Below, piece by piece: positions 31,605 to 57,648 of a stretch of DNA of 64,000 bases. The notes beneath the pieces were generated by a model that saw only the letters and a list, made by a program, of their open reading frames with translations, did no database searches and had not been told where the DNA came from. The DNA is from Fimbriosthenelais zetlandica. Its lineage: Eukaryota. The stretch lies in NCBI GenBank assembly GCA_977030845.1, contig OZ365112.1, positions 15,128,001 to 15,192,000 of the forward strand, read 5' to 3'. The position numbers and the translations under genes were made by a program. Positions within the stretch are counted from its first letter, which is position 1; the number at the start of each line of letters is the position of its first letter.

Positions 31605-31755
31605 TTATGTTAGCTTGTCTAGAGCACGTGTAAATTTTAGAGTTGAGACAAAGTCCAGTTTTAACTCATTTTTAACTGTATTGTAAAAGGTCTCTGGAGC
31701 TCGCGTTTGCATCTTCCTGATTTCAATCAATAACTCTCCATTAACATGGCCAAAC
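31605..31755 (-). CDS. ARM-TIR-SAM protein, last exon (C-terminal half of SAM-like domain): (K)FGHVNGELLIEIRKMQTRAPETFYNTVKNELKLDFVSTLKFTRALDKLT*
   Basis: Acceptor TTTAATTCCAG|; phase 2 matches the previous exon (AA|G). Open to TAA 31607-31605; has the G..L...APE.FY...K..L...LKF..AL pattern typical of this family's C-terminus. Confidence 0.9.
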
Positions 31756-31927
31756 CTGGAATTAAACATAAAGCAAATTATCGTGAGAAAAACCCCTCAT
31801 ACAGGAGAAAGAGCTTACTCCGTTTGTTATAATAATTATGTCCTACACTAAATACATTTATTCTGGTTCAAAAGCATTGTTGAAAACAACCCAATAGGAA
31901 ACAAAGAAGAGTCTGAGTAGCACATAC

Positions 31928-32069
31928 TTTTCTTGCAATGATCCTAAATCATTTTCTTGTAACCATTTAGCGACGTCTTCAACGTTCCATGAACTGATGC
32001 GCATAGTGGCATCCACATGTATTGCTGTGTTTATAGAGCTTAAACTGGGAGCTGCTACCAACCGCATAC
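31928..32069 (-). CDS. ARM-TIR-SAM protein, SAM-like exon: (G)MRLVAAPSLSSINTAIHVDATMRISSWNVEDVAKWLQENDLGSLQE
   Basis: Acceptor TTTCCTTTTAG| and donor AA|GTATGT; W..EDV..WL....L is the SAM signature; phase 1 to phase 2. Confidence 0.9.
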
Positions 32070-32839
32070 CTAAAAGGAAAATGAACAGCTATAATAGCAG
32101 ATCATAATGACTCCTAAGAGTTCTGCAATTGATCACTGTTGAAGACTAAATGGCGGTGGGTAGGGAATGCAGTTGTCAATAAATGATACTTAAAGATAAT
32201 AATGTGGAGAAAGAGAATACCCATCCTCTGACTCTTGGTAGATGCTAAATATACATGTACTTCGGAAAGGGTACCAATGCAAAATGATACCGGTATCGGT
32301 GTCCAATTATAGTTGCATTCTGGCAAGGACTGACATTTTATAGACTTAAGACCTTCAAGAGTCATGTGGCAAACAGAGCTAAAGGCAATCACTAAAGTTG
32401 TCCTTTTTAGATAACAGCTAATATTATGTACGTTAATTTTGTAAATTGCAAATTTTTAATAACAGATATTGTTTGTCAACCATCATTGATTGACGCTAGT
32501 GTATACGGAAGAGCTGACAATTTTTGATACACTTCCCTCCAGCAACAAAATTAATATTGATCTTTGTCTCAGAGCTTTTGTTCAGAATAGCATCGCCAAC
32601 CAAGGTAAAAATTACTCTAACGCTGTCATTAGTTAGCCCCAGCCTTTCAACTGGCTTTACCGCGACAATTAAACATCATTCGCCGACAGACATCACTCTT
32701 CGTTTTCGCCATGAATAAAACCATCTTGTATTGCAAAACTACAGCAGGTTTTCTTACATTTGTCATGGAGACAATTAGCATCGCTAACAGCACCGATGGG
32801 CTGACATTTCAGAGTTGTAATTAAAGCCAGACAAAAAGT

Positions 32840-32950
32840 AATCCCTGCCCGTCAGGCGGAAGTGACTGCGGTAGTTTGGAAGTGGTTAAGCTGGGATGAT
32901 TCCTGCGCGCTCTGCGGCTTTTCTTGCGTTAGCCCAGCAATGTATCTATG
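32840..32950. promoter_or_regulatory. Intronic CpG-rich promoter-like element
   Basis: GGCGGAAGTG (ETS/GABP-type) at 32855-32864 in a CpG-rich patch (about 32590-32960) inside the 3.2-kb TIR-SAM intron; minus-strand donor AAT|GTAAGA at 32758/32757. Confidence 0.35.
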
Positions 32951-34024
32951 GTAATGGACACGTAGCTGGATGAACACAGGCTGTGACGTGTTCATTTTAT
33001 TACCCCGATTACAATAGAGTCAGGAGAGAGAGACTGATAGATAACTTTTTGTGTGAACAAAGCAAGTTTTACTTGATGTTTTACTTGAAGGAAAAATCTA
33101 ACACAGTTGTAAGTGTTATGTATAGAGGCTTATAGAGTTTTCACTTCATGCAGGATTCTATAGATTCTGATATACATTTTGTACATTCATTCCCGATCTT
33201 CAAGGAGTACAGGAAAGAAAACATTTCCTGTATTCCTTTTCATAGACACCAAGGTACCAAGAGTTGCTATCAAGTAGCAAGATACTGAAAAGAACCATCC
33301 TTTATACCTAGAGTTTAAATATCTCTATGAGAAGACAATACCGGTAGAAAATATTATAGAGATCGACTTTACATTATGACATAAGCTCGTAAAAGGAAGA
33401 GATAACGATAGAAATAATAAGATGGATAAAAAATAGGTTAAAAACTTAAATCTAGAAACGCAAGGCAAATGAGTAAACTGATCATGCTCACTCCTTCTCG
33501 GAAATCACCCAAAATTTTTTAACAGTGGTGGGAGGTGATTTCATGAGACAGGGAAACCAACGTTACAGACATTGCTGTGTGCACTCACCTGTTGGGGATT
33601 GTTGGTGTTACGTGCAAGTCCTTACACAAAACAACTAACTAGTAAATATTACACTCTATACAGTTCTTGTTATGGTTCTGTTAAGTAATTTTGGGCTCTT
33701 ATCCATAAATCTAGGAGAAAGCACAAGGGTGAAAGGTCCATTGGGATGAACTCCCATACATTAAGTTCCAAATATTCAACACATCTATAACATTGAGCTC
33801 AATAATTTGTTTTAAAAACTCGAAATAGTGACTTTTGTCTACAATTTATGATTAGATTCCAAAACAAATTTCAAATATATCATAATGGATGACATAATTA
33901 TAATGTGGATATTTGTCACCCTTGGCTTTGTAACTGTCTAGAAGGAAGTTGTTAATGTTGTTAGACTGACTTTACCGGTACCTTTTTGATTATAAATCTC
34001 CATGGGAACCGTGGTGCTGTTCAG

Positions 34025-34159
34025 TGACGTCATACTTGGGGAGGAGAGATACCTCATTGCTAGATAACACAGAGACAACAGGAGATATCGTTACCATGGC
34101 AACTTGGGTTTGTCACCAGGCCTTAGGTCAGACGGCAACATGCCGTTGCCAACGGTAAC
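34025..34159. promoter_or_regulatory. CRE plus clustered RFX X-box-like motifs
   Basis: TGACGTCA 34025-34032, ATTGCTAGATAAC 34056-34068, GTTACCATGGCAAC 34090-34103 and GTTGCCAACGGTAAC 34145-34159. Confidence 0.45.
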
Positions 34160-35312
34160 AATTCAACATGGGGAAAACAATGGAACGATGCGCAACTACT
34201 TCAGGTTTAAAGAATCTAAAATATTAATCTAAAACTAAACTAAATCTTAAATTACTGTACGTAAATCAAATAGGGATAAACAAAAGAAAGAACCTAAACT
34301 TGCAATCTCTAACAAAATTACAAGTTATAATGGAAATTATAAAAAGAAAGATTTACAAAATTCAATCTCAAGTAGTACAATTATGTTATATTGTTGCATT
34401 AAGGCTTGAAAGGATATCTTTCAAAGGTGATCAAATAATAATGCGGGTTTTTATTAAACCAATTCACAATAAGAAAATCAACAAAATTTGAAAAGGATGA
34501 AAAAAAAAAGTTTCTAAATTGTTTTAATTGTAAACACAGGTAAAATTATGGTTAGTGGTCTCACTCTGTTCAATTGACATGCAAACATAGGGCAGTCAGC
34601 TAGATTTCAAATCACTCAAGGTTTTTCTATCCTAATGTGGTTAATAAAAGAACATAACATACGAAATAGTAGATGAAACAGATAGCAAAGATCCTCAGAC
34701 AAATTCCATATAAAATAGTTCCCATAAATGATAACTGTCAGTGGTCAATGTCGACAATGGTAATCAGTCTAAATAATTATAAATTTCATATTCATAAATG
34801 TCATGAAGCTCGACTAAAAAAAGAAATCAGGGAGGTGGGGTTGAGGGTAATCACTGGTTCAATTCATTTTAAATATTCCGTGAAGATCAATTCTAGTACC
34901 CGAAGGTCTTAAGTTGGGTTGGGCGTCCACTCAAAAAGCTATGCAAAGGGAAAGAGGCAATGACAACAAATGGGAAAGGATGTGCCAAAAGCGAAATTGG
35001 GTACAAACACCTGAGGAAGGGATACAACATTCCACCACCAGGTCTAACAGAACAGTAGGCCAAATCCTGCAGGTTCCAGTGAACACAAAACTTCCCACAG
35101 CCAAAAACAAAACCCAGCCAAATCACCACAACAAAATGTAAAAATATACAAGTTTCCACATTCCGACCACAACGAGATGGGAAATAAAATAACATAATGC
35201 ATCATCATTATCATCACCAAAATGCATCCATCTTCTAAACTATAAACCGGAAACTAAACCATCTTCCACCAGAGGAAGGTTTTGATGAGGATCTGCAGAT
35301 GGCTGCACCTAC

Positions 35313-35531
35313 CTTCAATGGAACTGCAGTCTGATGCTGGGCCGCGGACGCGACCTCTGGAGTTAAGTTCCCGTATCAAATTTGGCATCATGTTGTCAAT
35401 GTTGTCTTCACTTGTGAAATCAAAGGCGAGTTTGGAACCAACTAGTCTGCCTAGCCAGCCATCTGGATGATACCGGGGCTGTAGCTTCAGTGGGATTATC
35501 GCTTTCTTTAATCTGGTCGCATATTCAGATT
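35313..35531 (-). CDS. ARM-TIR-SAM protein, TIR exon 3: (E)SEYATRLKKAIIPLKLQPRYHPDGWLGRLVGSKLAFDFTSEDNIDNMMPNLIRELNSRGRVRGPASDCSSIE
   Basis: Acceptor TTTTCTATAATACAG| and donor AAG|GTAGGT; 219 nt, phase 1-1; IIPL.LQ..Y.PDGWLG and F-DF motifs of TIR_2-type domains. Confidence 0.92.
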
Positions 35532-35689
35532 CTGTATTATAGAAAAGAAAATCATAAGTCACATTATGATATCAATATCACTAAATCAGATCAACGTTCA
35601 CCATAACACCTCAGCGAACTCAAAGTTGTAATAACATCCCATTCTTTCTGCAGAGTATGTAAAAGAGTTTATATGCATGTCTCACTTAC

Positions 35690-35791
35690 CTGTTCTACAG
35701 ATGGGACTGTCTTTGTATTTTTGAGATAAACAAACAAGAAGTACTGCTGCTCTTTCTACAGCTAGTGACATTGCCTCAAGGCTGGGCAAAG
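35690..35791 (-). CDS. ARM-TIR-SAM protein, TIR exon 2: (A)LPSLEAMSLAVERAAVLLVCLSQKYKDSPICRT
   Basis: Acceptor TTGCTTGTTTTCAG| and donor CAG|GTAAGT; 102 nt, phase 1-1; LEAM..AVE.A.V..VC.S.KYK.SP.CR motif. Confidence 0.92.
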
Positions 35792-36288
35792 CTGAAAACA
35801 AGCAAAACTCCACATAATATGAACGCCCAATAGGATGAAAGAAGAGTGAATGAGTAAGCCAAGGGAGGCTGTGTAATTTTAGGTTCCCTATACTGAGGAG
35901 ACTTTTAGATCCAACACTCAGCCTGAGCGCCAGCTGATATTTGGCCAGCTTCCCATCTCTGACGTAAAACAAAATGTGATAGATAATCCAGAGAAAACGT
36001 GTATAACATGCAAGAGAACACTCTCAAAATATTAACAAAAAGTCATTTTATTTATTTTGACAATAAGGACTGTTTGAACATGACTTTTTACCAAATTATT
36101 AGGACGCAGAAGCGTAGGAAAGGAGGGCATGGACAGAACCCTGTCTCCTTCCCTCCCCACCGACCCATCTTGTCACCTTCCCTCACACCCACCTGTACTT
36201 ATGCAGCCCACCCATTTGGGAGGTCGAGGCTATGGGTATCATTTATATGTTTTATATTCTTTTTTACCCCAACATATACATGACTCAC

Positions 36289-36441
36289 CTATATTGTCTG
36301 TGTCCATCCAGACCTTGTAGCCGGCAGTACGGAGCCGGTCTCTGACCTTGGACATGACGAGACGTGTTGACCACTGGTAACTAATCATGACATGAGGTAA
36401 GTATGACGCTCCTACGTCACCGTTAACCCCGCGACTCCCAC
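36289..36441 (-). CDS. ARM-TIR-SAM protein, TIR exon 1: (G)GSRGVNGDVGASYLPHVMISYQWSTRLVMSKVRDRLRTAGYKVWMDTDNI
   Basis: Acceptor TGTTGGTTCTCAG| and donor TAG|GTGAGT; 153 nt, phase 1-1; HVMISY.W and GY.VWMD are TIR box 1 and beta-B motifs. Confidence 0.92.
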
Positions 36442-36603
36442 CTGAGAACCAACAGATAAAATGCCCATCAAAATTTAGCCTTACATAAAATATAATCAAT
36501 TTCTTGATTGATATACATTAAGATTGTCCTCAGTTGATGGAAAATGGGAGACCTGTACAATTGACGAATTTCTAGGACATTCAGATTCAGTTTTTTAACT
36601 CAC

Positions 36604-36858
36604 CAGGTATAGGTGATCCAGGTGGCTCCCTAAGTTCTTTATTTACTTGACTGATGGGATCCTTCCCGTGATCCTTGGCATTCTCCCTCCCGGCATTCTT
36701 AACGTGATCATTCCCATGATCCTTTACTTCCCCCCTGTTCTCTTTAACAGCCGGGTCTCTACCACAGCTGCTCGTCCGTTGTTGTATTACCCATAATGCT
36801 CCCTTGGCTGTCCTCCTCGTTTCTTCCCGAGAACCGTTTTGTTCCAAATCTTCTAAAG
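36604..36858 (-). CDS. ARM-TIR-SAM protein, last ARM helix plus charged linker: (A)LEDLEQNGSREETRRTAKGALWVIQQRTSSCGRDPAVKENRGEVKDHGNDHVKNAGRENAKDHGKDPISQVNKELREPPGSPIP
   Basis: Acceptor TTTCCTTCACAG| and donor CTG|GTGAGT; 255 nt, phase 1-1; A.GALW.I ARM motif. Confidence 0.88.
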
Positions 36859-37387
36859 CTGTGAAGGAAAGAAAATGGATTGTTCTAAGAAAGCTCATCA
36901 ACCTATTCTGACTGCCATCTTACAATTCTAGTAAAAAAGAACGAAAGATAACAAGGTCTACCAATACTTTTAGCATATTACACATGCAGGTTCCAGATGA
37001 TTTCGGAATGTTCAACACTAGAGCTGTCAGGATATCAGCTTCTGGCATATGTATACCGAGTGATCTGATGGAATATTAAGCTTTTTCCTAACAATAGTGA
37101 CGTATATCATGACATAAACGTGGCAGCTGGCATCAGTTGCCAGGGCAACCCTTGGTGTTTTTTGCTTTCATAGGTCACTCAACTACTTGATATTGTGGTG
37201 CTTTGGATGTTAGTTTCCAATGGTTGTTGTACATATACACGGGTATTAATAATTATGGCCAAACTTTAAATGCCTGGGTAGGAAATCCAGTGGAAAGTTA
37301 GAGAAAACATGTATGTACGAAAGATACACTTTCAGGGAAGAACATGCTTTTTCTGCGCCATAGGTGTACGTTTGGATTTAGACCTAC

Positions 37388-37582
37388 CTTTTATACAGCC
37401 TTTCTCTGCAAGGATGATTTGCCGGTTCGATCCACTAAAGGCAAAAACCCACAATCCCTGACAGGCCAGTATTTGTTCCTCTTCACTAGCGTTTCCTGAG
37501 AGTAATTTCGTGTAGACAGGCACCACACCCTTCTGTACGATACGTTCCTTGTTTGATTCGAAAGCTCCGAGACGATTCAACC
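37388..37582 (-). CDS. ARM-TIR-SAM protein, ARM-repeat exon: (G)LNRLGAFESNKERIVQKGVVPVYTKLLSGNASEEEQILACQGLWVFAFSGSNRQIILAEKGCIK
   Basis: Acceptor TTTACGTCTTTCAG| and donor AAG|GTAGGT; 195 nt, phase 1-1; N+..I...G..P.L..LL......EEQ..A...LW..AF is an armadillo repeat pattern. Confidence 0.9.
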
Positions 37583-37739
37583 CTGAAAGACGTAAAGCAA
37601 TCAGAAAATACTATTATGATCTAGTTTTTTTTATATCTTATGCAAGACATAATTAATATTTATTCTATGAGAAAATAACAACATGAACTTTTGTAAAAAA
37701 AAAAAAACAAAAAAACATGTGGTCCTCTAGACTACGTAC

Positions 37740-37824
37740 CAAATGCATGCCTGACCTCAAACCCACTGAACATATGAAGTACCCACTTCCCATGCCATAA
37801 ATAACCTATAAATAAGCTAATCAT
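37740..37824 (-). CDS. Candidate first coding exon of the ARM-TIR-SAM gene: MISLFIGYLWHGKWVLHMFSGFEVRHAF(G)
   Basis: The donor TTG|GTACGT gives phase 1 and a 157-bp intron, similar to the gene's other short introns (158, 162, 172 bp). The frame is bounded upstream by TAG 37839-37837. An alternative reading is an internal 66-nt exon 37805-37740. The donor is weaker than the others. Confidence 0.35.
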
Positions 37825-37959
37825 GGCAAGGGATATCTATGGTTTGTTTGCTTTTAAGTGATCCATCAGATTTTCGGGAGACCAGAGAGTGTAGTCTCTG
37901 TGGGGAGACTTAGGTCTTAGTAGAAAAAGGGGGACCTTTCTTGACTGGATAGCCGTTTC

Positions 37960-38020
37960 TGGCGATGGCAACCAGGTGGCTGTCAGTTTTAGGGCGTGCC
38001 GGAAGTGATGCGCAGTGACT
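37960..38020. promoter_or_regulatory. Promoter-like element upstream of the ARM exons
   Basis: Consensus ETS site CCGGAAGTG 37999-38007 flanked by GGGCGTG and TGCGCA, about 175 bp upstream of ATG 37824 on the minus strand. Confidence 0.35.
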
Positions 38021-41000
38021 GATAGGAAGGATAGGTGGCAGCCTCTGTTGGCACTTAATCTTATGGGTCAAAAGAGACCATAAGTCAATTTGTGTCAGGG
38101 TACGATGTACTCTCTCTATGGCAACCAATGGGATATATCTTATTGCAATATTGGGAGTAACTTTTTCCTAAAAGCTTTAAGAAACCAAATGACAAAAGCT
38201 CTGACAGAGATTACAGAAAACAGCAAGCTCTCTTGGGAAATAAAAGAAGGCAACACAGTAAAAGAGCCAAAGAACTATAAAAGCAAGATCGACTAAATCC
38301 CCAAACCTTTAATCCTCCTACCTCCATATTGGAACTACAGTGAAAGAGTAGAGAATAGAGCCCGTAGAGAGGATCTCAGCCACGAATTGAGACTAAGCAA
38401 TAAGATATTTAGCGAGAGAGCTTTTAGAAAAAAGAAATGCGTTTGTGGGCGCCAAAGCTTTTCATCCTCAGCCGCGACACTGTTGTCAAGCTCCAACTTG
38501 ATATCCAGTGAATCATCTCGCAAGATGATTGGATTAACCCGAGATTGACTGCTTCAGGAATTCAACAGAAATAGGGCAATATTATGGTCAAGCAGAAAAC
38601 AGCTAGAGAATGGTAAATGTTCTTTTTTTCCAGTTCCTCTCAAGGAATATCTTTAACCAGTCAGCAATTATAGCTTTTGGGGGATGGGATTTTCAATTCA
38701 TTTGTGAACTTCTCCGGTCAAGTATAAGAAGTACCAGAGAAGTACTAAACAGCTGGCCTACAGGACTGGAAGTTATAACGACTATGTATCCATTTCCCCT
38801 AGTACGCCATCCCCAAAACCACAAGGAAATAAATACCGAACTGTATTGTCAACTGAATTGTCAGAATCAGCTTGAAAACTTACAACATTCATTTCCTATG
38901 TGAAAGATGCAAAGGAGTGAACAATTTTAGTAACATCAAGGGTTTGAAGGATTAATATGACTCTGTGTTCAAGGTTTTGTTTCGATGAAATAAATAAAAT
39001 GGCGGATACTATCTGAGTGTTTACCTCAGAGAGGGGCCATGGAGAGAAGTAAGTAAACAAACTCCAGACAATCCACAAAAAATCTGTGTACTCTATACGT
39101 ACTTCTACACCTAACCTTTTTCTTTTAACAAATGCACATGGGAACGTTTCAGCAAGGGAGGTAGTAGATCCTCGGGCCCTCATCACTATCTCATACATCA
39201 TCAAAAACGGATGATCAGGGTGGTTATAGACAGGCTATGTATATGAACAATCTGGTGTAGGCCTACCATGGCAGGGGGGATGATGAGAAAAACATCCCAA
39301 AACGTGAACAACTGTGTTTAAATCTCCTAGTCCATCTGTTATCGGTACCATGGCGGGCTTCTGGCTAATGGAATGACACTAGTTCTTGCTTATATGCTCC
39401 ACGAGGAGCTTGGAACTCATTGTGAATAGTGTTCCCATAGAATAAAGGCAGCAAAGGCCAACCTATAGGTGAAGTTCCTTTGATCCAAGGTTACTTTGAT
39501 GGTGACGGCCTATAGTTCCCAGTTGTGGGTCATCTGTCAGTGAGCTTTGGCCAGAAGATCACTGTTTATTTATAAACATTCCTCAAAACTCACGCAAACT
39601 TGATGCTTCACTTTCACCACTTGTATTCACATTAAAAGTTGCATTGAAGAAATGAAGATTTGAATCTACTATACAGGACTGAAATAGATCAGTACAGACA
39701 AGGAAAGAGATTGTATGGATTTGGAATGGGATAAATATCTTCCATCCATGATTATCTGGGGATCAGTACCATATGCATGGGATGTGCTGGTCTCAAACCA
39801 GAACAGAATGTTCAATGGAGAAAAGGAATGGTTATGATGCTAATGGTCACTATTTTATACGATCGTCAGATCAGTCTTTTTCTTAAGTGTGGAATAGAAT
39901 GACAGTTAGATGTGATATAATGATGTTACAACCCACGTGTACCAGTTTGTGTCAGAACAGCAGGAGTCAAGAGAGATACAGAGTTACGCCATCTACCCTG
40001 ATAAGACAATAGATAACTGGTTTCAAATCACCCGCCAACACAATTCATGTCTAATCATTTCCTGTCCTTTTTGGCAACGGACATTGAAAATCCAGCCATT
40101 ACATGTCTTATATTACTGTCTACAGTTATTTTTGTTGCGTTAATCCGTGGAGAATCTCTGAGGTAAAAACTGTCAATAATGGGTGAAAAGAGTCCGGTAC
40201 AGGGTCGCCTGGGACCATTTGGCTGTTGATGTATTTCCCCAGCTGTCAATCCTTTGAGACTGAAGCTCAATATAAATAGCTCCCTCGTAAGGGATAATCT
40301 CTGTTAATTGCAGTCTTTCCCAAAATTCCTCAGTTACAGCTATTCTTCTTGGATAACGACAGGAACTATGCAAAAGGAATCCATATCCCTATGAACACAT
40401 TCAGAACTTTTATAGCCTTGAATTGCTGCTGGAGAGTTACATCAATAATATTACCAGTAGGATCCACTTTTTATCTGTAATGTATTGAGAAGTACGAATA
40501 AAAACAGACATCAAGAGGATACATGCGTGAATTATGAGTGAATTGAGAGGTAATGAATTGGCTACTATTGACTTCTAGTACAGGGCGAGATGCCCACAGG
40601 GACCTAACCCGAGATCTCGGCGTCTGTACATCAGGAAACCAAAAATAAATCATTTCTATTAGAGACAGATTGGTCGATTTTTATGCCCAATGTGGCTCTG
40701 AAAGGACTAATTTATCCTAAGTAAAGATAGATCAGGAAGTAACATAGAACTAAAAATGGGTGGGAGCATTCCACAGACAAATCCCCCATCCATTTCCCTC
40801 CAGGCTCCCCATCCCAAAACCATCCTACTCCTCATCTACCCTCCATAACAACTTGCCCACCCTACTCTGCCTACCCTTCTACCCACACACACACATTCAA
40901 ACATAGGTTTCCATCCATCCTCCCTCCAAAGGAGACTGCTCAGTCATCAACCTATTTGCTAAGCAATGGCGCCATCTCGCTGTTACCATCTCTATGATGC

Positions 41001-44000
41001 CAGGTCCCCAGGGAAATCTCCATGTGGAAGACTGGATACTAAATGTGAAAGCAATTTTGGGATCAACATCGCAGACAGAGTATTGGGGTCAGACTGCGAG
41101 CACCCCAGCAGGCTTTCGAAGGGACACTAAAACTAAATATTTTCTGGATCTGATAGTATTTGAATATGAGAAAACTCAAAAGAAGAAGTATGTTTCATAT
41201 CCTCGCCATTGATTGGGCCAATTCGAGCCAAACACAAATACTACCATCATGGGGACCATTGGTACCACCTTGAGAAATGCCATGTCTATAAAGACATCAT
41301 TATTATCCACACAACATGATAGCAAAACCACAAAGGTTATTAATGTCGACCTTATCTATACGGAGGGTGTTGTGGTCGATTGCTCCACAGTTCTATTGTA
41401 AAATATTGGTGGCACGTTTATTGGGCGGGAAGGGCAGCCATGAAGGCAGACATCTGCCTCAGACTACAAGATAACACTTATATAATGGCCCAAAAGGTCA
41501 AGAACATCTCTTAATGGCGTATAACAGAATGTCTACATATTTTGTGGTACATTTGTATATCATATTATTACTCTTATCTGCAATATTCAAGTGGCATGCA
41601 AAATGAACGACTCTTGGCAGTGTTTGAGTAGCTTCCTACCCACTGGGCACCGGAGAGCACTCTTGACATTTGAAAAGCAGATTTCTCTTCATCCCCCTCC
41701 GAACTATTTGCTGAAGCAACCAATCACCAGCGTCGACCTTTGACATGCTTAATTCTCCAGTCACCATGGCAACGTGCTATTATCAGAGTGTGATCAAGCA
41801 GAAGATGCTGATCATCCTCATACTAGGTCATCGGGTACACATACAGGATAATTCAGGCAAAGTGCATCGTCATTCAGAATATTTAACAGTATCTGCTTCC
41901 AAATACAAGTTTATGTCCATTGACCTCGGCATTCAGATTGGTTACTTTAGGCATTATTCAGTATGTGACCACCAGATTCTTATAATACATAGGCCATTTT
42001 GCTGAGCGAGAACAGCATGCTAATTGACAACTCATGAAGGCTTCTGCACAGGTCATGCGCTTTAATTACTGGTCACAGATTGGTCAATATTTGCAAATGT
42101 GCAGAGGGGGAATTGGCAGGGAATGGCACTGGCATCTACCATGACTTGTTAATGGCTGATGGTTGCCCTTTTCATTCCCAATCTCTGCATCAGATGGCTC
42201 CCGGGGAGAGTAATGGCGTGCTAAATTGCAGCTAAGATCATTAATGGAACTACTAGTCCTTATGAAATTAGCAATTGACTGAAACTTGATTAAAGCCTGG
42301 GGTAATATTGTCAGCAGCGCCAAGGAGGTCCAGAGGGATTCCTCACAATATTCGATTCATGTCTTTGTTACTGGGGAGGATACAGGCACATTTGTAACAT
42401 CGGAAAATATCTACAAATGCTTTCCAACAAAAAAAATATGTATTTGTATTATATTTGTTTAGGGCAAACAACCTAACCAGTCCAAGGTTGAGTCAGCAAC
42501 ATTTAGAACAGATGAATGTCACTGGAGCAGTAATGAGGGAATGCCATGGTCAACTCCCTCATTGAGTAATCATTTGGCAGAGTATGTATAGAATGTTAGC
42601 AAATAATAGGCCTACGCTTCATGTGGCTTAAAGTTCATAGATCTACACTAAACAGGACCGATTTTATATAGTTACAGGCTGTATTGACTCTACGTATAAG
42701 AACAGGACACTGAAGTCAATATGGGCGCCGCCAGACGAGATAAAGTAGACAGGGAAATGATGCTTGTTAACTTGTGCAAGGGTAATCATTCAAACCATTA
42801 ACACAAAATGTATAGCCAACCATTACCTATAGTGCGAAGGCCGTCATGTCTAACCCAATGTTTTTGGGGTGGTGGCTGGGTATGCTAACGTCGACCCCTG
42901 TATAATAGGAAGCAACACATTAGTAGGGGAGGTATTTCCTGGATGGTATAGGGGTAGATGGTGGGTGAGAGATTTACCTGGGCAGAATGACACACATTCC
43001 TATTTTCACACATGGGGTCAGACGACAAAACATCATCACCAGCAGCCCTGGCCAAATCACCAAGACAAAAGGTGCTGACAAGCATCCTTCAGGACTGATT
43101 GCTTCCATTTGGGTTAGACATCTGTTTGTTTTGTCACTGAAGACCAGAGGAGATGAGCAGAGGGACAGGGGCAGAGGCAATGTGAAAAGGCATGGAAATG
43201 TGAAAGGTGAACGATACCCTAAAGCTGAACAGAACCACCATACATGCTCAGGTTTATCCATCCTCACAGAACAGATTATATACACTTAGGAAGACTCTTC
43301 TAAGAGAATCAAGACGTAAAAGAAAGTTAAAAACTATAGTTAGGTGAAAGTCAGCTTTTGGAAGTAAAAGAGGAACCACAGCTTTGCGTTTTCTTTCACA
43401 CCTGTGTGTATTTCTTTTATAACCCAGAGACACCCCAGAGTTTCCTCTGGGATCCAGGGTCCATATACAGGGTACCATGTCAACAGAACCCACATCATTT
43501 TCATGCCAAACATTCCATCCTGCCTGAATATTACCATAACTAACCATCATTCTCACGTGTCTCTATGCATGTATACATGCTGGTTGGTGGCTGGCAAGAT
43601 TAGAGGCTTTGCGTGGGGTCCGATCCTCAGACTGGAACACAGCAGGTTCACTCATGTCAGGACCGATTTATTACTGTCTTGTGGCTCAATTACTAACCAG
43701 CAGCACATCCATGTCGAAAACCCTGAGAAATTTTGACACCTTGATAGTTAAAATACAGTATTGTGTTTAGAACCTCCTGGTATTGTATTTTCTTGATGAC
43801 ACAGAACAACAGACGAAGACAAGTTCAGTTTCGGTGATAGATCGCAGATGCATGTTTGTAATGTCTTTGTAATTATTCTAAATTCCGCAGTGAGGAGCCA
43901 CCAGTCAAGGACTTATACTTTTTACGACATTCAACTAGGCCTGTGGGTTGGAGACACCGAAGAATGATGGAGCACTTTCACCCACGGCCCTCCAGCTACC

Positions 44001-47000
44001 TCGTCAGTCCCTCTCTACTATTATTACATACACATACATAGATGATCTATTTATTACTCCTGTCTTACATTTCGCCCTGACCCATTCACCTGATTTTAAC
44101 ACCGCATAAGTAAGTACGAAACTATGCCTGAGGTAAAAACGAAGCACCATGCAGGGGGTGTAAAATACACTCCAAAAGTCAAAACTGGTTGATGTTCAAC
44201 TTCTGTAAACCGAACTGATAGGCCTACTGTAAATTGATAGCTAATCTCCAAGTAAAACAAACAATGGTAGGAGATCTGTAATTAAAAGATGGCCTGGTTC
44301 ACTAAAGAAGTTTTGTTTTCATTTAAGTACATTGACATATGAGTTTACTTGACCCTGGATGTACTTGAAGAGTTAAAGGTCATAGGTGCCTTGTGTATGA
44401 TAGAAGATCAGGCTAAGAGTAAACATACAATTTCTCTAGCCAACAGGATCCATACAACACCAGCGTCGCTTGGCTATTCCATCTGTCTATAATTCCTCTA
44501 TTTTGGAGGGATAGTACGAGGTGTGTAAATGGATAAACAAGGTAAACTATTTTCACACCATGTCAATCATTGTTTAACCTTTGCAACTAAAATGACTCAA
44601 AGTAATGCAGTGATACTTAGTGATATCGAATACCAAAATCTAAAGAAGGCAGTGTTTAGAGTTGATAAGCGAATAAAGAAAAGTAACATATTAAGCGGTC
44701 TTATCTGTCTTCATTGAAATGCATAATAATTCAATCTATAACAAGGAAGTCCCTAAAGGGGGGATAGGGGATTGATTGCTCTCATTCCCTGTCTGTTGTT
44801 GCAGCTTCAGGCCACAGGACGTAACGAAGGTTAGCAATTCGTTGACTAAACGTCACATATAGTTGGGATGGATATTTGTAAAACATTATGTAGGAGGTCC
44901 ACCGTGAGTCTATTCTCGGCTTAAGTGTGCATTGGACTTGAGGGAAAAAGAAAACGTTGGTACAACATATATAAATGGTTCTATGGAAAGAGTATGTTTG
45001 ACTCTGGTAAGTCGAAAAAGATGAGCTCAGAGTCTGGGGAATTGACAGTAAAAACAGAAGACAGAAATATATAGCTTTGAGTCTCTTTCTTTTTTTCTCC
45101 TTTATCCTCAGTAATATAGTAATTTTCTTATAAATAAGTGAAGTAAGGATTGGGCTTATATTCATTCTACACAAGGGAAAGAGTTCTTTGCAAAAAGAGC
45201 TCTGGTTCTGATTCTATAAAGGTCACGTTCAAAGGTATTTTTACATTTCATTCCGTGGTTTCTTGATGTTAGGAGAAGGGAATTCACGAATGTTGTCTGT
45301 AAATAGTCTCCATCAAATCTTGACCTTTGTCATATTTTGCTAAACCTGAAGTGCTGCTCCTTGAGAGGGAACACTATTTTAGTCCCACTCAGAAGACATT
45401 CCACCACCAACTATTATGACCCACATGGAAAGACAAACATGTCACGGACTGAGAGACTGGGAGAGTTTGGACTGTCCGTAGTTCCTTTTTGTACCTCGTA
45501 CATGCACACAACATGTTATGTTACATTTTATGATTGATTCACGTGTGTCAGCACCCAATCGATGATGACGGACGAGTGAAGTATGAATGATATGAAATAT
45601 GAAAGTAGTAAGTGAATGAGTTGCCTGAGGGCAGAGTGAGGCTCGGGCCGAAGATCGATGCTAATTTCAGAGTCATCAAACAGCACTGTGCTTTCTATTA
45701 GAAGGAAATACCAGGAGTGTTCATATATCAATCAGTGGGGAAAATCTGAATTGATAAAAAGAAGCTTTACATTAAAGACATGGTATGCTTTTATATCACA
45801 CAGGGATGATAATGGATCATCAATACGAAATCCCAGCATCACATTGTCCTATGTTAATAAGACTGACTTTAATTTCCGATGGAAGTGCAATATGCTAAGC
45901 TACCTTACTCTTGTATATTCAATTGTATCTATTTCTAATGATTTTGTTTCCAGACAAACGCGTATCATGGATGAATCTATGGACAAATGAATGAGTAGGT
46001 GAGATCCAGCACTGATACATGTCTCTGATATCTATATAGGAAGGATTCAATAAACTGAGACTGGTTCATTCTGCTACCAGAAAAACAACTGAAGTAATTA
46101 ATTGATTAATCAGAACAAGAGTTGGTGCTTCGGAAGCCAGATTCCGGTCGACTAAACAAATGAACAGAGAGACAACCTCCTTTCCTGGTGCGTATTGACA
46201 TGGACTATAAACCTTATAATTTGCAAGCCTGTAACAATCTAAACTGGCTTTTCTCTCACTTGCTAGATCTAGTATCCTTCCAATCAAACTACAAGCATAC
46301 CTATTATGTCTCCAGCAGGCAACAAGCACATCCAATCAGTCCTTAATTAAAGACAGAAGTGTCATTAATGGCTAGAGGCACAACTCGACAAATCTCAGGG
46401 ATTTACCCAGTGCCGGTGAACGCAGTGTGGAAATATTGTTATCACGTATTCTCAAGGGAACGTGTCAAAAATAGCTCATTAATTTGCGTGACTTGTCAAG
46501 TAACTATCTTCCACAAAGAACAATTATTATTATTATAGAATATTATATCCCGAGTGGTCATAATTATGCCATCTATACACTGGAAGGACGACACCCATTT
46601 ATATTTGCAGCAGCTGTACCACCCCATTGTGCACCGTGAGATGTGACCTGCATATTATGACAAACGCTATTTTCCCATCGTTTGACACCTTCCATAACAA
46701 CTAATGATCTTTTGCACCAATCTTCTGAGTAAATATTGAGTCTCTAGCTAGCAGTTATTGACACTGAGAGCGTAAATATTTCTCCATATTTCCTCAAAAG
46801 AGAATATGTGTGGATAAAGAACATAGCTGGACAATGAGAAGCAATTCTGCGAACACGCTAGTGACATCATTTCAATATATGCTTACATTTTTTGTTACTC
46901 AAACGATGGGAAAAATATGAGTATGTCTGAAATGTGGATAAACCCTTATTATTGTTAGAACCTGGATGAATAGCCCACAATGCGGGAGCATGTGGACCGG

Positions 47001-48849
47001 GAAATAAGGAGAGCTCTACACATTGCATGCCTCGACATGGCTCTGATGGATGCCACTATCACAACACTTGAACTAAACCTTTAACAGCTGAAGAGCGGTA
47101 TATCTCCATACACAGCCCATAGCATGGCATGAATTTTTAAATGATTATTACGGCTCTAGTTGTATTTTATTTTCTATATAATTGGAGCTATAGGCTTCTG
47201 GACTAATTATTTCGGTAACGTTCCTGCAACGCGGTAAAAACGCGAGAAACAATTATTTAGAATAGGCAGCCTAATGAGAAGGCCAGGGCTCAGCCACTAG
47301 ACCACACACATCTCATTTCTGTGGCATCTACAGTGGTATCGATCTTCCTTCCTCTGCTGTCAATAGATGGCTTCCTTTTATAAATGATCAAGACATAGAA
47401 ACTCTCCATAGACAATCCTTCACACCACCAGAGGTTAAAAATACAATTATGGAGGCAAATAAGGACATCTTTATGATGGTTAGGAAATTGAAATAGCAGC
47501 TAGCATGCTTGTTTTGGGGTAACAAAAATATCTTTCGGTATAAATAGGCCTAGAAATATGTCCAACTGTTTTCTGAGTTGTAACAATAAGTAAGTATACC
47601 ATCAAAAGTTCAGGAGTAATATAGTTGGAAAGAATCCCCACACCAAAGATTTTATATGCCTACTGGAGTCAAAATCACCCATCAGGATTAGTTAAGGCTC
47701 CAGGAAAATACCGTTGTCTCATCCTAAATAGATAGGTGCTACCAGGAAGCACGTGGATCATCAGCTGCAAACGATTGACCCCGGTAGAGATCAGGAGTTC
47801 ACACTGTGAATATATATCATCTTCATTACAGTAGAAGGCAGAGCATTTGTAAACAGCTATTTTAGGGTGCACGGCAGGAGGTGTCTATTAACCACAGTGT
47901 AGACCATCTTATCCTGGAAACGTGTGAGGAAATCGTGATGTCTCAAAAAGTTACAGCTACCCTATCTTCAGCTCCAGATACCTCTGAAAACATATCCCCA
48001 AAAGACATAAAAGTTTTAAGTTTATAACACGTTAAGAGTAGTACCTACTTATGGGTTTTAGGCTTGACCTTACACTAGACTCTTCAGAGACATAAGTATT
48101 AGGAGTCGAGCTACGGCCTGATGCCAGTTGCCTGGGATTACATCTCCCTAGGCAGCTCCTCTCCTTAAGTTTAATTCGATCAGAGGAAAAAAACCCTCTT
48201 GAAATATTAGCCAGTCAATTGGATGGAAGCGTCCATTTGGTCCCATGAAAGTACCATGAGACGTGGTGCTACTTCTCAAGGATATGATTCGGTTTCGAGA
48301 AAGTAATGCCGTGAAATTGGCAGAGATGGCAGACTCTTAAACTTAAAGTAATCACAGATTGGGTGAGCAATTAACATTGTGATAATATCGTATTGGGAGT
48401 GTTAAATTCATCATGAGATGCAACTACATTTATGAACAATGCATCATTTTCGAATTTGCAACGTCTTCCTCCTTTATCATTACCATGCAGGCCGGAGCAC
48501 AGATTCAACTTCCATTCTTCACATTGAAATGATTCAAGTACCTTTTCTTGCGCATCTATCAAATTGTCTGTAAAGGAAAACTATACCATGTAAATGTACT
48601 CAGGTTCATGAAGTGTCTTATTACATGGCTGAGCTGGATTTTGCGGTAGACAACCTCAATTTGATGACCTCCTACACTGTAACCTGCATGGAACAGAAAT
48701 CATCAGTCAATCTATACTCAGGCCAAGTAGGCGACTGCCAGTTTAAAGATTGAGGCCATGTTTGAGTGGCAAGTAGGCATTTTGTGTATTTAGCCTTTCT
48801 TAGTGAACAAAGGCTAGGGGATGCGGGGGCTGGAGATGTGGACGATCAT

Positions 48850-51800
48850 TTTATTGGAGCTAGGCATGTCTGGGGGTGGTTCTGTTGCCAGACAAATTGT
48901 TAAGAGGCTGTCTGAGACCGAAAGTTCTTTTCGACATGGAAAGGTTCCATTTGTTCGTCAGTCATAGCTGCCACATTCTGATTGGTATCATTCAATGGCG
49001 AGCAATAAAATACCATACAACAAGGCAATTTCTGACATTCAGAATGGGCATATTTCAAGCAATTCTGAAGCATCTGTAGATACTTCTATAAGTGAACGGT
49101 CGTCCAGGAAGCCAAGTCTTAAGCAAGTCTGTGTTTAAGCCAAGGACCAATAGAAGACTGATTTGAGCAGATACATATAACTAGTATTCATCTGGAATTC
49201 TTCATGATGCTCAAAAGTAATCTTCTTTCCTTCAAAGTAACATTTCTCCTACTCTCTGACTATGTCTAGCCTGCAGGAAAGAACATCCCACAAAGGTGTC
49301 TTTGTGCTAATCTAGTTTTCACAGAGAAAAACGTGAGAAAGCATGGAAGGTTTTGAGTCAAAACACCTCAACAACAGACCGAGATTTTTTTGTGTTCTTT
49401 GTGAGGCAGCAGTTCTCTGAAAGTGGAGTCGTGGTTTAATTATACCATTCGTCTCCTATAGGATAACTCTGAAAGTAAGTCAGAACAGGTATAGTATCTA
49501 TCCACGTTCCCCGATCCCGATTATTGTAGCACGTCGTCTGAGGTCACTATTTTATTCCATAGGAATAGTTACTAAAATGTATACAAATACTTTTCCATCA
49601 GATGTCCCTTACTTCGTGCATGCATGATACTTCACGGTACACATTTCTACCAGAAAGGCCTAAAACAGAAAGACATAAGGACCACAGGACAAGACCAATT
49701 CTCTGCTTCCAGAAAGTCGGGAGAGTCACTCCAAACATGCGCATACAGACAGTGAGAAAGATAATGGATACACCCTGAGAATACCTCCCAGGCCAGGGTA
49801 ACAAATACTTAATTAGCCTGTTAAAATATTCCTGCCACAGCTCCCTGGAGTGTGCGGGGCCTGAGGCCATTTTTTTTGGTTCCTACACGGTAAAAACAAG
49901 CTGAATAATCCAGGACCAGCTACGGTTGAATCAGAAAAAGATACTGGTTCTTAATTTTAAATTTTGCATTTCATTAAGGCAAAACTCCATGAACTGTTAC
50001 AATACAATTTGTAAATCCTACATCGTTTGGTCAAATTGTAATGAATGCATTAAAATGGATAATTCTGTTTCTAAGAGTGTAAAGATGCAGGCTCGCGGCT
50101 CTTTAGTCTAGACAAGACTCGTACCCCCTACTTTCTTTTATCAGTAGGAAGATAAGACCTGACAGGAGTTAGAACCCGAGCTCTGTAGCCCTAGATAAGA
50201 GCTTCATAAAAAATCTACACAGCATGCTGAACGCCCGCTAGGTGTCATCAATGAACGATATAGGCTGGACGGAATACAGGCGGCTGATGGCTGTATAACG
50301 AAGCACAACTGTTGATACCACATTTATACCAGCAAACAAGAGGAGAATATCTGAACCAATACAGTGTCAATCTGATACATAAATCATGGTACATAATCTC
50401 TGATTGCCCATTTTTCATTTGAAACCAATACAGATGCTCAACTTGATGCAATTTAATGTGTCAACCTATATCTGTCGACTGAAGTATCATTCCCATTTTA
50501 ATATACTACTCAATGACACACTGCTGAGACAATAGAAGGAGAGATGAGGATGATAAGTCAAGGCGTTAAGATAACATCCCTGCACATGTCGTCCCATATC
50601 AGTGATGCCCATCCCTCATAGTGAAATGAAACGTGTAATAAGATTTTCACGGTAAGCGATGGGTGGCCATACACATCATATATCTCTAGCTTTTTTCACC
50701 CTTCTACAGACACCTTTTCAGCCTTACCATAAGAGCTATGAAACACGAGGTATCAAGCTATTTCCGATATAGTACTGATCTTAGATACTTGATTTCACTA
50801 TAAATTATAGATGTTGGCTGTCTCAGTAGAGATAATTCCCAAATGTGATGATTGTTCATGATGCTGGATTAGTCAAGGGTATAGTTCCGGTCTTTTCCAC
50901 CTTTGTACACTACAAAGCTAGCGAGCAGAGACCTCTGATTGGTCAAAATTGGTCAGCAACACAAACAACGTCATTTCCTGGTGCGATTTTTGGAAACATG
51001 GCGACCACCAAATTATAGTGGCTTTATTGATATCTCTCTTATGATATTGCATTATACCACATGCTACTTAAGGGTAGTTTCAAATCTCTTTGACAAGGCA
51101 ACAAGTCATCACATTTTCATAATAACAACAGACGGACTGAAGAAGGAAATGAAAATGTGATTCCCTTCCAGCTACCACCTTCCAAAGGAAACTTCAGTCC
51201 ATCAATCTAGGAGTGGGTAGAACCCAAAACTCGGGTTTCCACCCCATGAGACCACATGCATGGGGTTCGGGGATCACTACACCTTAGGTCAAAGGTTATT
51301 TAGCATCAGTCTTTGTCAGGGTCACATAACATGACCTCTACCTTTGATTCACCACCAGGTGGGACGGCCATCAGAAAGGTGAAGTGTAAAATGAGACCGC
51401 CAGGTGTCAGTGCCAGGGTAAGTCATGTGATGAGCCGGGTAATTGTGGCAGAATCCGACTAAAGAGAGGGGCAGATCACGGGAGAGAGGGTTAGAAGGCA
51501 ATACTATTGTCCTTACTATAAGACATTCAGTCAAAAAGAGCAAAGATATAAGCTAAACCCAGCAAAGCTCAGTCAAACCAACGAGTTGGTCAAACACAGC
51601 AATGTGTGAGTAAAGAGGATTGCACGGTATATAGAGAAGACATGTCTGCCAGATGTAGGGACGAGGGCCGTACTAAATCACTCCTGACCTCCACCCCCTG
51701 CTCACCTCCACCCCTCCAGACACCCAGCCGCCTCCCTGACCACTCTCACATTAGAACCAATATATATCTCACCTTCACTTCAAGAGTACTTTATTATAAA

Positions 51801-52728
51801 AGGTGGCAAGCGTATGTACATGCCATAATTATTTCCATGTCCATGTCAAAACACACTGGATGTTGGAAACAGAAAGTGTATTGAGCAGAGAAGACCTTGA
51901 AGGCATATAATTATATTGGCTGGTATTAGAGGCAAGAGATTCATTAGGCCTACCTAACAGTAACATTCATCGGGAAAGATAACTAATTCAGAGACAAAAT
52001 TAATATTTAATAATCCCAATTCAAATGTATGCACGCTGGACACATCGACTCTTAGATATAAGCTCTGGTTTAAGAAGGTCAGAACCCTGTTCATTCCACT
52101 GATTCCATAGGAGTCTACTGGGTGGATCTCCACCCACACCCTCGCCTGCAGCCATCCAATTCCCATTTCTCTTGGGTACTTTTCCACTTTCTCTACACAC
52201 TCACTCCTTTATCTCTGTACTATCTTCCTTATCTCCAGTTCCCCAGGCTGACAAGGGGTTTTCCAGATAGGCACGTGACTTCCACGAGAGGTCACCCGAG
52301 AAGTGTCACAAGATGTCCTGCAGACTGGCGCAAAATCAATTTTCTAGAGAATGCGTTGTCCAGGCTCAAAGAGAAGGTTTTTGATTAAACCCCTTACCGA
52401 TTTAGGGTCTCAACTCTCCTCAAAGGAAATGTGAGATGTTCATCAAAAGCATCTGTAAAATATATAACGCATCTCAGAACATACTTCTCAAATTACTGTA
52501 TAATAAGGGTCTGTTAATATTAGGCCAGTTCTTACAGAAATATCAGTTGCTTCAGCCTGTTTCTGTTCTTTAATCTCCCTTTCTTTTCGCTCCATTTCAA
52601 TGCTTTTTCTTTGCAAACTTCAAGTCAGCTTCAGTCCCAAAGAAAACATGGCTTTTATAAACAGAGTGTCCACAATGCCCACTCTTAGCGTGCCTCCCAT
52701 CTCGCCAATGTCAGGGGTCCACTCCCGT
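48850..52728 (-). pseudogene. Chain of canonical-looking exons with disrupted coding frame; possible decayed 5' part or paralog of the ARM-TIR-SAM gene, or a non-coding transcript
   Basis: Exon-like units 52728-52536 (CTCTCCAG|, TCT|GTAAGA), 49659-49613 (TTTCTGTTTTAG|, GAA|GTAAGG) and one starting 49270 (TTCTTTCCTGCAG|) join in frame as MERKEREIKEQKQAEATDIS-AFLVEMCTVKYHACTK-LDIVRE*EKCYFEG. Downstream pieces in shifting frames (YRCFRI, CLKYAHSECQKL, PLNNLSGN) only loosely resemble N-terminal ARM motifs. Confidence 0.3.
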
Positions 52729-55700: not shown

Positions 55701-56912
55701 CTTTTTCAAATTTAGAAAAAAAAGTGGAAGGTAAAGTGAGTCATTGACTATGTGCAAGGCAATGCTTCATGTCTTGAGTAGTAAGACTTGGGCCGAGGAA
55801 ACTCGACATCCCACAGAAAATAAAGTCCTCTAGTCTTCCTTCACTAGTCCAAGATTAAGCACCTGCTCCACCACACATACCTAGATGTCAGAATGCTACA
55901 GATAAAAAGGCATATACCAAGGCTCCTTCCAAGAACCATATAGGACACCAAGTTCTCATATCTTAACTTAGAACAGCAACATCTTTTCAACACATCCCAA
56001 TCGATGTTTATAGAAAGGCCATCATGCCAAAATTTCGATGAATGTAGATATTTATGTGGCCAATATTCCTTCCAACTGAGACAATTATATTTCTCACCAG
56101 GTTGCAAGATTATGCATATTTCATATTCGAAAACTGACTGGATTGATTATAGTTAAATATGGTGGTAAAAAGCACTGTCTTATACGACAATGCCACTTAA
56201 TGACATGGGTTAAGATACAGCATGTTCGATAAAATTCCAAGAATTTCTTTTCAAAATATCAAACATCTGTGTGTACAGAATGATAGTCGAAGTAATATTC
56301 TGAATCTAGGCCATGGGGTAAAGGAGGAGTCAGTTGAAATGTTATACTCTAGAAAGTCTGTATACAAAACAAAAACACCTGCAGGTGTCGAAGTGGATGC
56401 GATGAGATGTATCCGACAACTTGTATCTCCTATTTGTCTACATTAGTCTTTCTCTTTTTTCTTTGCGTTCAAGGGAAAATAGAGTATGCCTCAAAGATCA
56501 ATGGCACAGAAAAGTTGACGATAATAGTATCTTTGCACGAATACTGATAAAAAGATTGAATTCGAAGAAGAGATAGAGAATTTGGAGTATTTTGAAACCA
56601 AGGGGGATATGCAGACACTGGACTCAAAATGAAGAGTTCCATATCGGGTTGCTAGGTAACGAGGAGGCGTATATATAACGTTTCTCTACTTGTATTCATT
56701 TCCTGCCCTGCTTTTGTATGGGTCTAATAGAACAGGAAACTGTCCACTTGGAGGGGGGTAATTTTCCGGCATTTTTCTCGTGATATTTATAAACATTTTG
56801 TGCCAGATAGACAACAGGGGACATATTGCGGTCAGAATCTTTTCATCTCCCAAATTTACAGTTGGCTACCAGTGGTTACCATGCTGTCTACCGCAATGCC
56901 CCTAAACAGGAC

Positions 56913-57590: not shown

Positions 57591-57648
57591 CCACGAGGGG
57601 GCGTTGGTCTCCCATGACGTCATTATTGGCGTTAAGCGCCCCCTCCTG
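57591..57648. promoter_or_regulatory. Inverted pair of CTCF-like motifs flanking a CRE
   Basis: CCACGAGGGGGCG 57591-57603 (+), TGACGTCA 57615-57622, ATTGG, and GCGCCCCCTCCTG 57636-57648 (CTCF-like on the minus strand). Confidence 0.4.

Follow-up and report, generated by a model that had tools for sequence, protein, structure and literature searches.

What is encoded at positions 31605-37582 of a 64,000-nucleotide (nt) stretch of the Fimbriosthenelais zetlandica genome (the window, on contig OZ365112.1), and is its TIR domain an enzyme? A preliminary description drawn from the sequence alone had presented this locus as an intact seven-exon gene for a SARM1-like candidate NADase (NAD+-cleaving enzyme) composed of ARM repeats, a charged linker, a TIR_2-type domain and one SAM domain. 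Our analysis reveals that the locus almost certainly represents the 3′ seven exons of an intact eight-exon gene, which encodes an 850-amino acid (aa) cytosolic protein of the ARM-TIR_2-SAM family. With hardly any doubt, this protein opens with a disordered N-terminus rich in Ser and Pro, continues with an armadillo solenoid, a charged linker and a TIR_2-type TIR, and ends in a single SAM domain. From its sequence, and with a little less than even confidence, it is predicted to be an oligomerising TIR signalling protein that acts on NAD+. Coordinates refer to the window unless given as C13 or L002, which are contig positions outside it.

Gene structure and the missing first exon

The seven exons lie on the minus strand and are all flanked by AG...GT; read and spliced by script, they give an uninterrupted frame of 404 codons whose sole stop, TAA, lies at 31607-31605, and each of the first five introns of this model is phase 1. 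The borders and frame thus agree with the canonical GT-AG exons described earlier. The exon at 37582 starts at a phase-1 acceptor and contains no start codon, leaving the seven-exon model 5′-incomplete. The first ~275 residues of the homologues have no in-window counterpart in tblastn with 32 full-length homologues (E<=20), with noise only at 37.6-64 kb. Searching the species' own genome with the Owenia protein P0077 places residues 33-277 at C13:15201010-15201924, in one open frame, and residues 275-343 at window 37383-37589. The former match defines coding exon 1, which is encoded on the same strand as the other seven and lies upstream of them, 35.4 kb from 37582 and 9 kb past the window end. 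The claim of an intact gene at 31605-37582 therefore holds for the seven exons, which are real and intact, and fails for the extent of the gene, whose first coding exon is outside the window. Spliced together, the upstream exon and the seven exons yield 850 codons with no stop inside.

Conservation of exons and splice sites across species was used in place of RNA junction reads, drawing on two contigs from related organisms, L008 (Logan ERR14368249) and L009 (ENA ERZ25767047); the paralogues C11 and C27 of the same genome are listed further below. The features of the gene are as follows (a slash marks a break within a quoted sequence).

Coding exon 1, C13:15201012-15202347 (L002 2347 to 1012; window-equivalent 73012-74347), minus strand: 1336 nt, 445 codons; ATG, disordered N-terminus and most of the armadillo domain; donor CAG/GTAAGT at L002:1012/1011, phase 1.
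Intron 1, in-window part, 37583..64000, minus strand: 26.4 kb of the 35.4-kb phase-1 intron from coding exon 1 to exon 2.
Intron 1 acceptor, 37584-83, minus strand: tttcag/GG.
Coding exon 2 (exon 1 of the preliminary description), 37388..37582, minus strand: residues 446-511, last armadillo repeats; Pfam Arm 14.6 bits (sub-cut-off), tblastn to Owenia P0077 residues 275-342 at 50% identity.
Coding exon 3, 36604..36858, minus strand: final armadillo portion (to ~36779), followed by a charged linker rich in His, Lys and Asp; the stretch '...GCIK/ALEDLE...GALWVIQQ' agrees with homologues.
Coding exon 4, 36289..36441, minus strand: linker end and TIR N-terminus, TIR from ~36397, with strand A 'HVMISYQW', helix A and strand B 'KVWMD'; Pfam TIR_2 27.9 bits, profile 1-33; donor G/gt at a position common to L008, L009, C11 and C27.
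Coding exon 5, 35690..35791, minus strand: BB loop, helix B, strand C, 'KYKDSPICRT' and the opening G of the Glu codon; Pfam TIR_2 17.1 bits, profile 42-69; protein 91% identical in L008 and L009, with synonymous codon changes.
BB-loop triplet, 35781..35789, minus strand: TTG CCC AGC, encoding Leu648-Pro649-Ser650 in place of the family Gly-Ser-Thr.
Glu681 codon G/AA, 35530..35690, minus strand: split by a 158-nt phase-1 intron, with G at 35690 and AA at 35531-35530; GAA in L008 and GAG in L009; intron position common to C11 and C27.
Coding exon 6, 35313..35531, minus strand: TIR C-terminal half '...IIPLKLQPRYHPDGWLG...FDF...LIRELNSRG', TIR end ~35338.
Coding exon 7, 31928..32069, minus strand: short linker and SAM N-terminus, SAM from ~31998, 'ISSWNVEDVAKWL'; Pfam SAM_1 13.4 bits (weak), 96% identity to L008.
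Coding exon 8, 31605..31755, minus strand: SAM C-terminus and TAA (31607-31605); tblastn to P0077 residues 583-634 (E 1e-10), 96% identity to L008.

Full-length homologues align with the window exons in order, their coordinates abutting at each junction (tblastn), and blastp of the eight-exon product against Owenia P0077 returns a single match spanning 561 residues (289-849 against 120-634, E 7e-142). At the exon 1/2 junction the alignment to the Owenia protein is free of gaps, and the rebuilt split Gly codon stands opposite Gly. Intron 1 measures 35.4 kb, against 158-3243 nt for the remaining introns of the gene. Protein calls of exon-1 open reading frame (ORF) type from other assemblies, 42-94% identical, all end a few residues after '...AVEVxAG', and intron 1 is therefore conserved. 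Within 6 kb of exon 1 in the related assembly L007, none of the downstream exons of the orthologue was found; with neighbouring exons more than 6 kb apart there too, large introns are therefore typical of the locus.

In L008 and L009 the downstream exons are joined at the same points, and their donors and acceptors sit at identical positions. Over 290 aligned codons, the window and L008 are 81% identical in nucleotides and 90-96% in protein, with a nonsynonymous divergence (dN) of 0.038 against a saturated synonymous divergence (dS) of ~2.5, giving a dN/dS of ~0.015 that is rough owing to saturation. Its direction is unambiguous and indicates strong purifying selection. Judged by this comparison, the gene is intact and functional, because two related assemblies keep its exons and splice sites at such a low dN/dS.

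Three side observations concern the non-domain parts of the gene. The protein begins with a polybasic 'MRKKKG' (L002:2347-2320), similar to 'MRRHKKDKKG' and 'MGRKKDKDK' of orthologous ORFs, followed by ~130 Ser/Pro-rich disordered residues; the polybasic stretch may be a membrane-binding or nuclear-localisation signal. The linker of coding exon 3 (36604-36778) is rich in His, Lys, Asp and Gly with imperfect internal repeats 'KDHG...KDHGKD', and its length varies: L008 differs by a 4-residue indel, L009 by more, and the Owenia linker is ~40 residues shorter. The 35-kb intron contains a repeat resembling a short interspersed element (~150-185 bp, window ~50845-51060), present in at least 40 copies of 69-87% identity across many contigs of the genome. 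A DNA search of 20 kb of the intron (window 37600-57599) against the genome returned this one short interspersed repeat and nothing further, and the ten largest ORFs of the window, inspected for gene or transposon ORFs inside the big intron, have no Pfam match.

Domain architecture

The AlphaFold (AF2) model of residues 141-445, encoded by the gene's own exon 1, is an all-helical repeat solenoid (predicted local distance difference test, pLDDT, 82) with a disordered acidic insert at residues 231-278. Foldseek retrieves only armadillo proteins and beta-catenin for this model, weakly (E ~5e-3), and VIA-align scores it at Z 14-16.6 against WapL, beta-catenin, ZYG11B and Armc8; the SARM1 ARM is absent from the top 50 structural matches in the Foldseek and VIA-align lists. 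Exon 1 itself has no Pfam Arm match, and its fold is taken from structure prediction; Pfam Arm and ARM_ARMC5 do match the region of the homologues aligned to the armadillo part. On full-length homologues, Arm/ARM_ARMC5, TIR_2 and SAM_1/SAM_2 all score over the cut-off (SAM_1/SAM_2 in P0077, P0024 and P0016).

The spliced TIR aligns to that of its nearest homologue, oyster P0006, over 132 residues without a gap at 64% identity. The AF2 model of the oyster TIR (pLDDT 87) finds Hydra TRR-2, RPS4, SPARTA (TMq up to 0.79), SARM1 (0.62-0.70) and MyD88 as fold matches in Foldseek. The family C-terminal profile retrieves only SAM domains from the PDB, including liprin-beta, ETV6, SARM1 SAM1 (E 1.4e-6) and Shank, and the C-terminal 85 residues are matched by 143 family proteins; on the gene's own split exons the SAM Pfam scores are sub-threshold. 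The profile check proposed for the exons thus returns TIR_2 on two of them, along with weak Arm and SAM_1 matches, and together with homologues and fold models it supports the domain content given in the preliminary description.

Family membership and paralogues

An exhaustive HMMER search identifies 895 library proteins matching the 72-residue TIR exon at E<=0.001; the full-length ones measure 520-840 aa. The ARM-TIR-SAM architecture, for which at least 576 matches at E<=1e-10 were obtained, is found in corals, Nematostella, hemichordates, amphioxus, bivalves, gastropods, cephalopods, chitons, annelids, nemerteans and brachiopods. Single in-order matches of ~560 residues at 31-41% identity come from Owenia, Capitella, Branchiostoma, Lingula, Haliotis and Ptychodera, and such alignments to full-length homologues of several phyla establish the proposed membership in an invertebrate ARM-TIR-SAM family. 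TIR identity to family members is 52-64% across phyla, from corals to annelids, around the motifs HVMISYQW, KVWMD, KYKxSPxCRxExEY and PDGWLG, and the gene keeps 40 of the 46 TIR columns that are at least 90% conserved among 157 members. That the family is distinct from SARM1 is a conclusion we hold very firmly.

Four further loci in the same genome belong to this group of sequences.

Paralogue C11, C11:14353017-14356508 (L003): compact canonical ARM-TIR-SAM gene, complete.
Paralogue C27, C27:19449412-19452121 (L004): compact canonical ARM-TIR-SAM gene, complete; the in-gene TAA belongs to its intron.
Paralogue C10, C10:56546277-56547688 (L005): one exon encodes the bulk of the TIR, starting at strand B.
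Paralogue C25, C25:30997713-30998279 (L006): degenerate TIR without most family motifs.

C11 and C27 (~3-3.5 kb) share both TIR intron positions with the gene and have no counterpart of intron 1. No public gene model of this genome occurs among the protein matches, where single-exon queries could miss an 850-aa protein through the length filter.

The family has been catalogued before. It is probably group 18 of Toshchakov and Neuwald (PMC7075850); 'ARM-TIR' proteins are listed as putative adaptors of unknown function (PMC9334734, PMC6321704), and a 2026 survey points to several TIR clades that are confined to eukaryotes, frequent in molluscs and cnidarians, and uncharacterised (PMC13142454). 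The gene has the same architecture as the catalogued metazoan ARM-TIR(-SAM) proteins; its lineage differs from them in a longer disordered N-terminus, an acidic armadillo insert, a Leu-Pro-Ser BB loop and Ala716 in place of an aromatic residue. Numbered ecTIR-DC families are reportedly defined by Gerdol et al. 2017. Rule-based UniProt names within the family include 'ADP-ribosyl cyclase/cyclic ADP-ribose hydrolase' and 'NAD(+) hydrolase SARM1'. Three amphioxus proteins, P0151, P0193 and P0194, illustrate the annotation trap, carrying the UniRef name 'NAD(+) hydrolase SARM1' yet being ARM-TIR-SAM proteins and not SARM1 orthologues; on family members this automatic name misleads.

A conserved polar pocket in the TIR domain

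The best PDB sequence match of the family TIR profile is Cat1, a CRISPR-associated TIR NADase (E 7e-5). In the profile alignment, E681, Ser616, Asp642 and Ser675 occupy the positions of Cat1 E74, S7, D33 and S68, with all four residues identical. These Cat1 residues are named as active-site residues, and the D33A, S68A and E74A variants are defective, S7 not being among the listed substitutions (PMC12162218). The Glu of DSPICRTESEY, assigned earlier to the catalytic position, is placed by the family profile on Cat1 E74, and its codon is split between 35690 and 35531-35530 exactly as claimed. The SARM1 alignment ends before this Glu, and the equivalence of E681 and E642 is drawn through the shared S-x-x-C/W-x-x-E motif and Cat1 E74.

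Glu is present at position 681 in 153 of 157 family members. The pocket polar residues S616, Y617, Q618, W619, D642, S675, C678, R679, E681, E683 and Y684 are all kept in the gene, and the polar residues around the pocket are at least 95% conserved in the 157 family TIRs, from corals to chordates. Such a conserved polar pocket looks like a ligand or substrate site.

Lineage-specific remodelling of the BB loop

The six deviations among the 46 conserved TIR columns place the gene among the most divergent 9% of the 157 members. Four of them lie in the BB loop (646, 648-650) and a fifth (S655) in helix B, the run beginning at the exon 4/5 junction. Here the family sequence Met-x-Gly-Ser-Thr is replaced by Ile-Ala-Leu-Pro-Ser. 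Across the family, Gly, Ser and Thr occur in 151, 147 and 145 of 157 members (96/94/92%) and all three together in 142, whereas Leu-Pro-Ser occurs in none of the 157; the paralogues C11, C27 and C10 of the same genome retain Gly-Ser-Thr. A weak profile alignment to the human SARM1 TIR (E 0.024) places the family triplet on A600-G601-K602 and the preceding Asp on D594.

The orthologues L008 and L009 likewise have Ala-Leu-Pro-Ser-Leu-Glu, encoded by codons that differ synonymously, and the replacement is therefore not decay. In the TIR tree, a 100/100 clade unites the window gene with L008 and L009; its stem measures 0.81 substitutions per site and its tips are very short. The C11 paralogue groups with Capitella. 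This tree shape is typical of rapid change succeeded by constraint.

An alternative splice that keeps the BB-loop Gly was considered, using a donor 4 bases downstream of 36289 and an acceptor at 35783-82, in frame and two residues shorter; it was rejected, as the donor is absent in L008 and L009 and the canonical sites are conserved. A second lineage-specific change is Ala716 ('KLAFDF', coding exon 6; listed at window 35744-35746), at a column that holds Trp, Tyr or Phe in 151 of 157 family members; Ala is also found in both orthologues.

Proposed mechanism and alternative explanations

We propose, tentatively and with rather less than even confidence in the scheme as a whole, that SAM-driven self-association would gather TIR domains, and that the assembled TIRs would act on NAD+ through a pocket formed by Ser-Tyr-Gln-Trp of strand A and the AA loop, the Asp after strand B, Ser675 and Glu681. 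A partner or ligand may bind the armadillo domain, or the domain may restrain the TIR. That ARM senses and SAM oligomerises, as the preliminary description put forward, is likewise something that we infer. In this lineage the BB loop, which serves TIR-TIR assembly and as an active-site lid, has changed from Gly-Ser-Thr to Leu-Pro-Ser, and strong purifying selection has since preserved the new sequence. We therefore expect a difference from the canonical paralogues of the same genome in how the TIRs assemble, how active they are or what they produce.

Several observations weigh against action on NAD+. Adaptor TIRs have BB loops that contain Pro, as Leu-Pro-Ser does, and our literature search found no biochemical study of the ARM-TIR-SAM family. 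The conserved Glu is weak evidence for NADase activity, because >70% of all TIRs, including the non-enzymatic TLR1/2/6/10, carry Glu at the catalytic position and its frequency does not track activity (PMC7075850). Four residues before it, where SARM1 W638 contacts the ligand (PMC7075850) and Cat1 has W70 in the profile alignment, the gene carries Ile at residue 677 and the family Asn (114/157) or Ser (37/157), with no Trp. The distance from strand C, as located in the AF2 model, to the Glu is ~12 residues against ~21 in SARM1 (PMC8266388), too short a stretch, and therefore without a counterpart of the SS loop (SARM1 622-635) that is called characteristic of active TIRs (PMC8266388). The BB-loop Gly equivalent to SARM1 G601 is missing in this lineage, and in SARM1 the G601P substitution lowers both NADase activity and multimerisation (PMC8266388). 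The preliminary description was right about the Glu; the strength of its NADase inference was overstated, given how widespread the Glu is, the lack of Trp at Glu-4 and the loss of Gly-Ser-Thr.

A role as a non-enzymatic adaptor or regulator, nearly as likely as action on NAD+, is a serious possibility. The TIR would then be an interaction surface only, with SAM and armadillo recruiting partners, and, about as plausibly, the Leu-Pro-Ser loop would mark a shift to heterotypic TIR-TIR binding, for example to Toll-like receptors, MyD88-like proteins or the Gly-Ser-Thr paralogues. This explanation accommodates a Glu whose conservation is not tied to enzymatic activity (PMC7075850), the absence of both the Trp at Glu-4 and an SS-loop-length insert, and a Gly lost and Pro gained in this lineage only, as well as the long stem (0.81) and short tips, which a change of function would be expected to leave. 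The top Foldseek matches also include the TIRs of Hydra TRR-2 and MyD88, with scores similar to those of enzymes, and published catalogues list ARM-TIR proteins as putative adaptors (PMC9334734, PMC6321704). However, polar pocket residues at least 95% conserved from corals to chordates are more in keeping with a ligand or substrate site than with a scaffold, and the nearest solved relative by sequence is a NADase whose four mapped active-site residues are identical. An improbable further reading holds that the Leu-Pro-Ser lineage no longer takes part in homotypic catalytic TIR assembly and co-assembles through SAM and TIR with C11 and C27 to gate or redirect NAD+-derived signalling; if true, such co-assembly with Gly-Ser-Thr paralogues would parallel, in animals, the TIR pairs of sensor/helper or decoy type.

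Two explanations that question the gene itself are far less probable. It is very unlikely that the armadillo exon and the seven window exons are separate loci that are not co-transcribed, the remains of a gene broken by an insertion or a 5′-truncated copy with an internal promoter. Although the 35.4-kb intron exceeds every other intron of the gene and even whole paralogous genes (~3.5 kb), and C11 and C27 have no intron at this position, the junction joins a consensus donor and acceptor of the same phase, rebuilding a Gly codon that aligns gaplessly to the Gly of homologues. In other assemblies, moreover, at least 8 orthologous ORFs stop at the very residue where exon 1 ends, the neighbouring exons are >6 kb apart in a related assembly as well, and both halves are constrained, exon 1 being 82-94% identical to its relatives and the 3′ exons having a dN/dS of ~0.015. 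Least likely of all is a decaying paralogue on its way to becoming a pseudogene, its BB loop altered under relaxed constraint, as the deviation at six of ~46 family-invariant TIR columns (most divergent 9% of 157) might suggest. The 850-codon frame is open under that same low dN/dS, and the deviating residues are kept in two other assemblies through synonymous codon changes; pseudogene status or relaxed constraint is effectively refuted by the L008/L009 conservation and dN/dS.

Comparison with SARM1, Cat1 and adaptor-type TIRs

The gene resembles SARM1 in having the same three domain types, a Glu at the E642 position as located through Cat1 E74, the Asp after strand B on D594 and a SAM related to SARM1 SAM1 (E 1.4e-6). 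It differs in domain order and SAM number, being ARM-TIR-SAM with one SAM against the ARM-SAM-SAM-TIR of SARM1 with tandem SAMs; the TIR similarity is marginal (E 0.024, N-terminal half only), and the Trp at Glu-4, an SS-loop-length insert and the BB-loop Gly are all missing. The label 'SARM1-like' is thus apt for domain content and not for order or SAM number, with the SARM1 ARM not retrieved, only that marginal TIR match and a TIR fold no closer to SARM1 than to other TIRs. The gene is not a SARM1 orthologue, and the 'rearranged' domain order of the preliminary description is not to be read as derived from SARM1.

Identical counterparts of Cat1 S7, D33, S68 and E74 and the highest fold TM-scores of the TIR model, which are to the TIRs of SPARTA TIR-APAZ, connect the gene to prokaryotic TIR NADases, and by analogy its activity would likewise depend on oligomerisation. 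Identity to Cat1 is only ~20%, however, with Cat1 W70 replaced by Asn/Ser in the family and by Ile in the gene, and the fused domains are eukaryotic ARM and SAM, whereas those of Cat1 and SPARTA are CARF or Argonaute-associated. Adaptor-type TIRs (MyD88, Hydra TRR-2, TLRs) reach comparable Foldseek scores, and the BB loop of this lineage shares their proline; unlike them, the gene has no death domain, transmembrane or leucine-rich repeat part, and its pocket residues are shared with NADases.

Implications for the ARM-TIR-SAM family

The gene adds a new member to a family that is catalogued yet uncharacterised; apart from its BB loop and the lesson that it holds for annotation, it is an ordinary one. 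That lesson concerns a first exon hidden by a 35-kb intron, such that ORF- or window-based models truncate the gene. SARM1 was the sole animal TIR protein known as an enzyme in a 2020 survey (PMC7075850). The ARM-TIR-SAM family, with a TIR 52-64% identical between corals and annelids and four NADase active-site residues kept, is a strong candidate for an enzyme test beyond SARM1, and the Leu-Pro-Ser and Gly-Ser-Thr paralogues within one genome provide a natural pair for testing animal TIRs other than SARM1 as enzymes.

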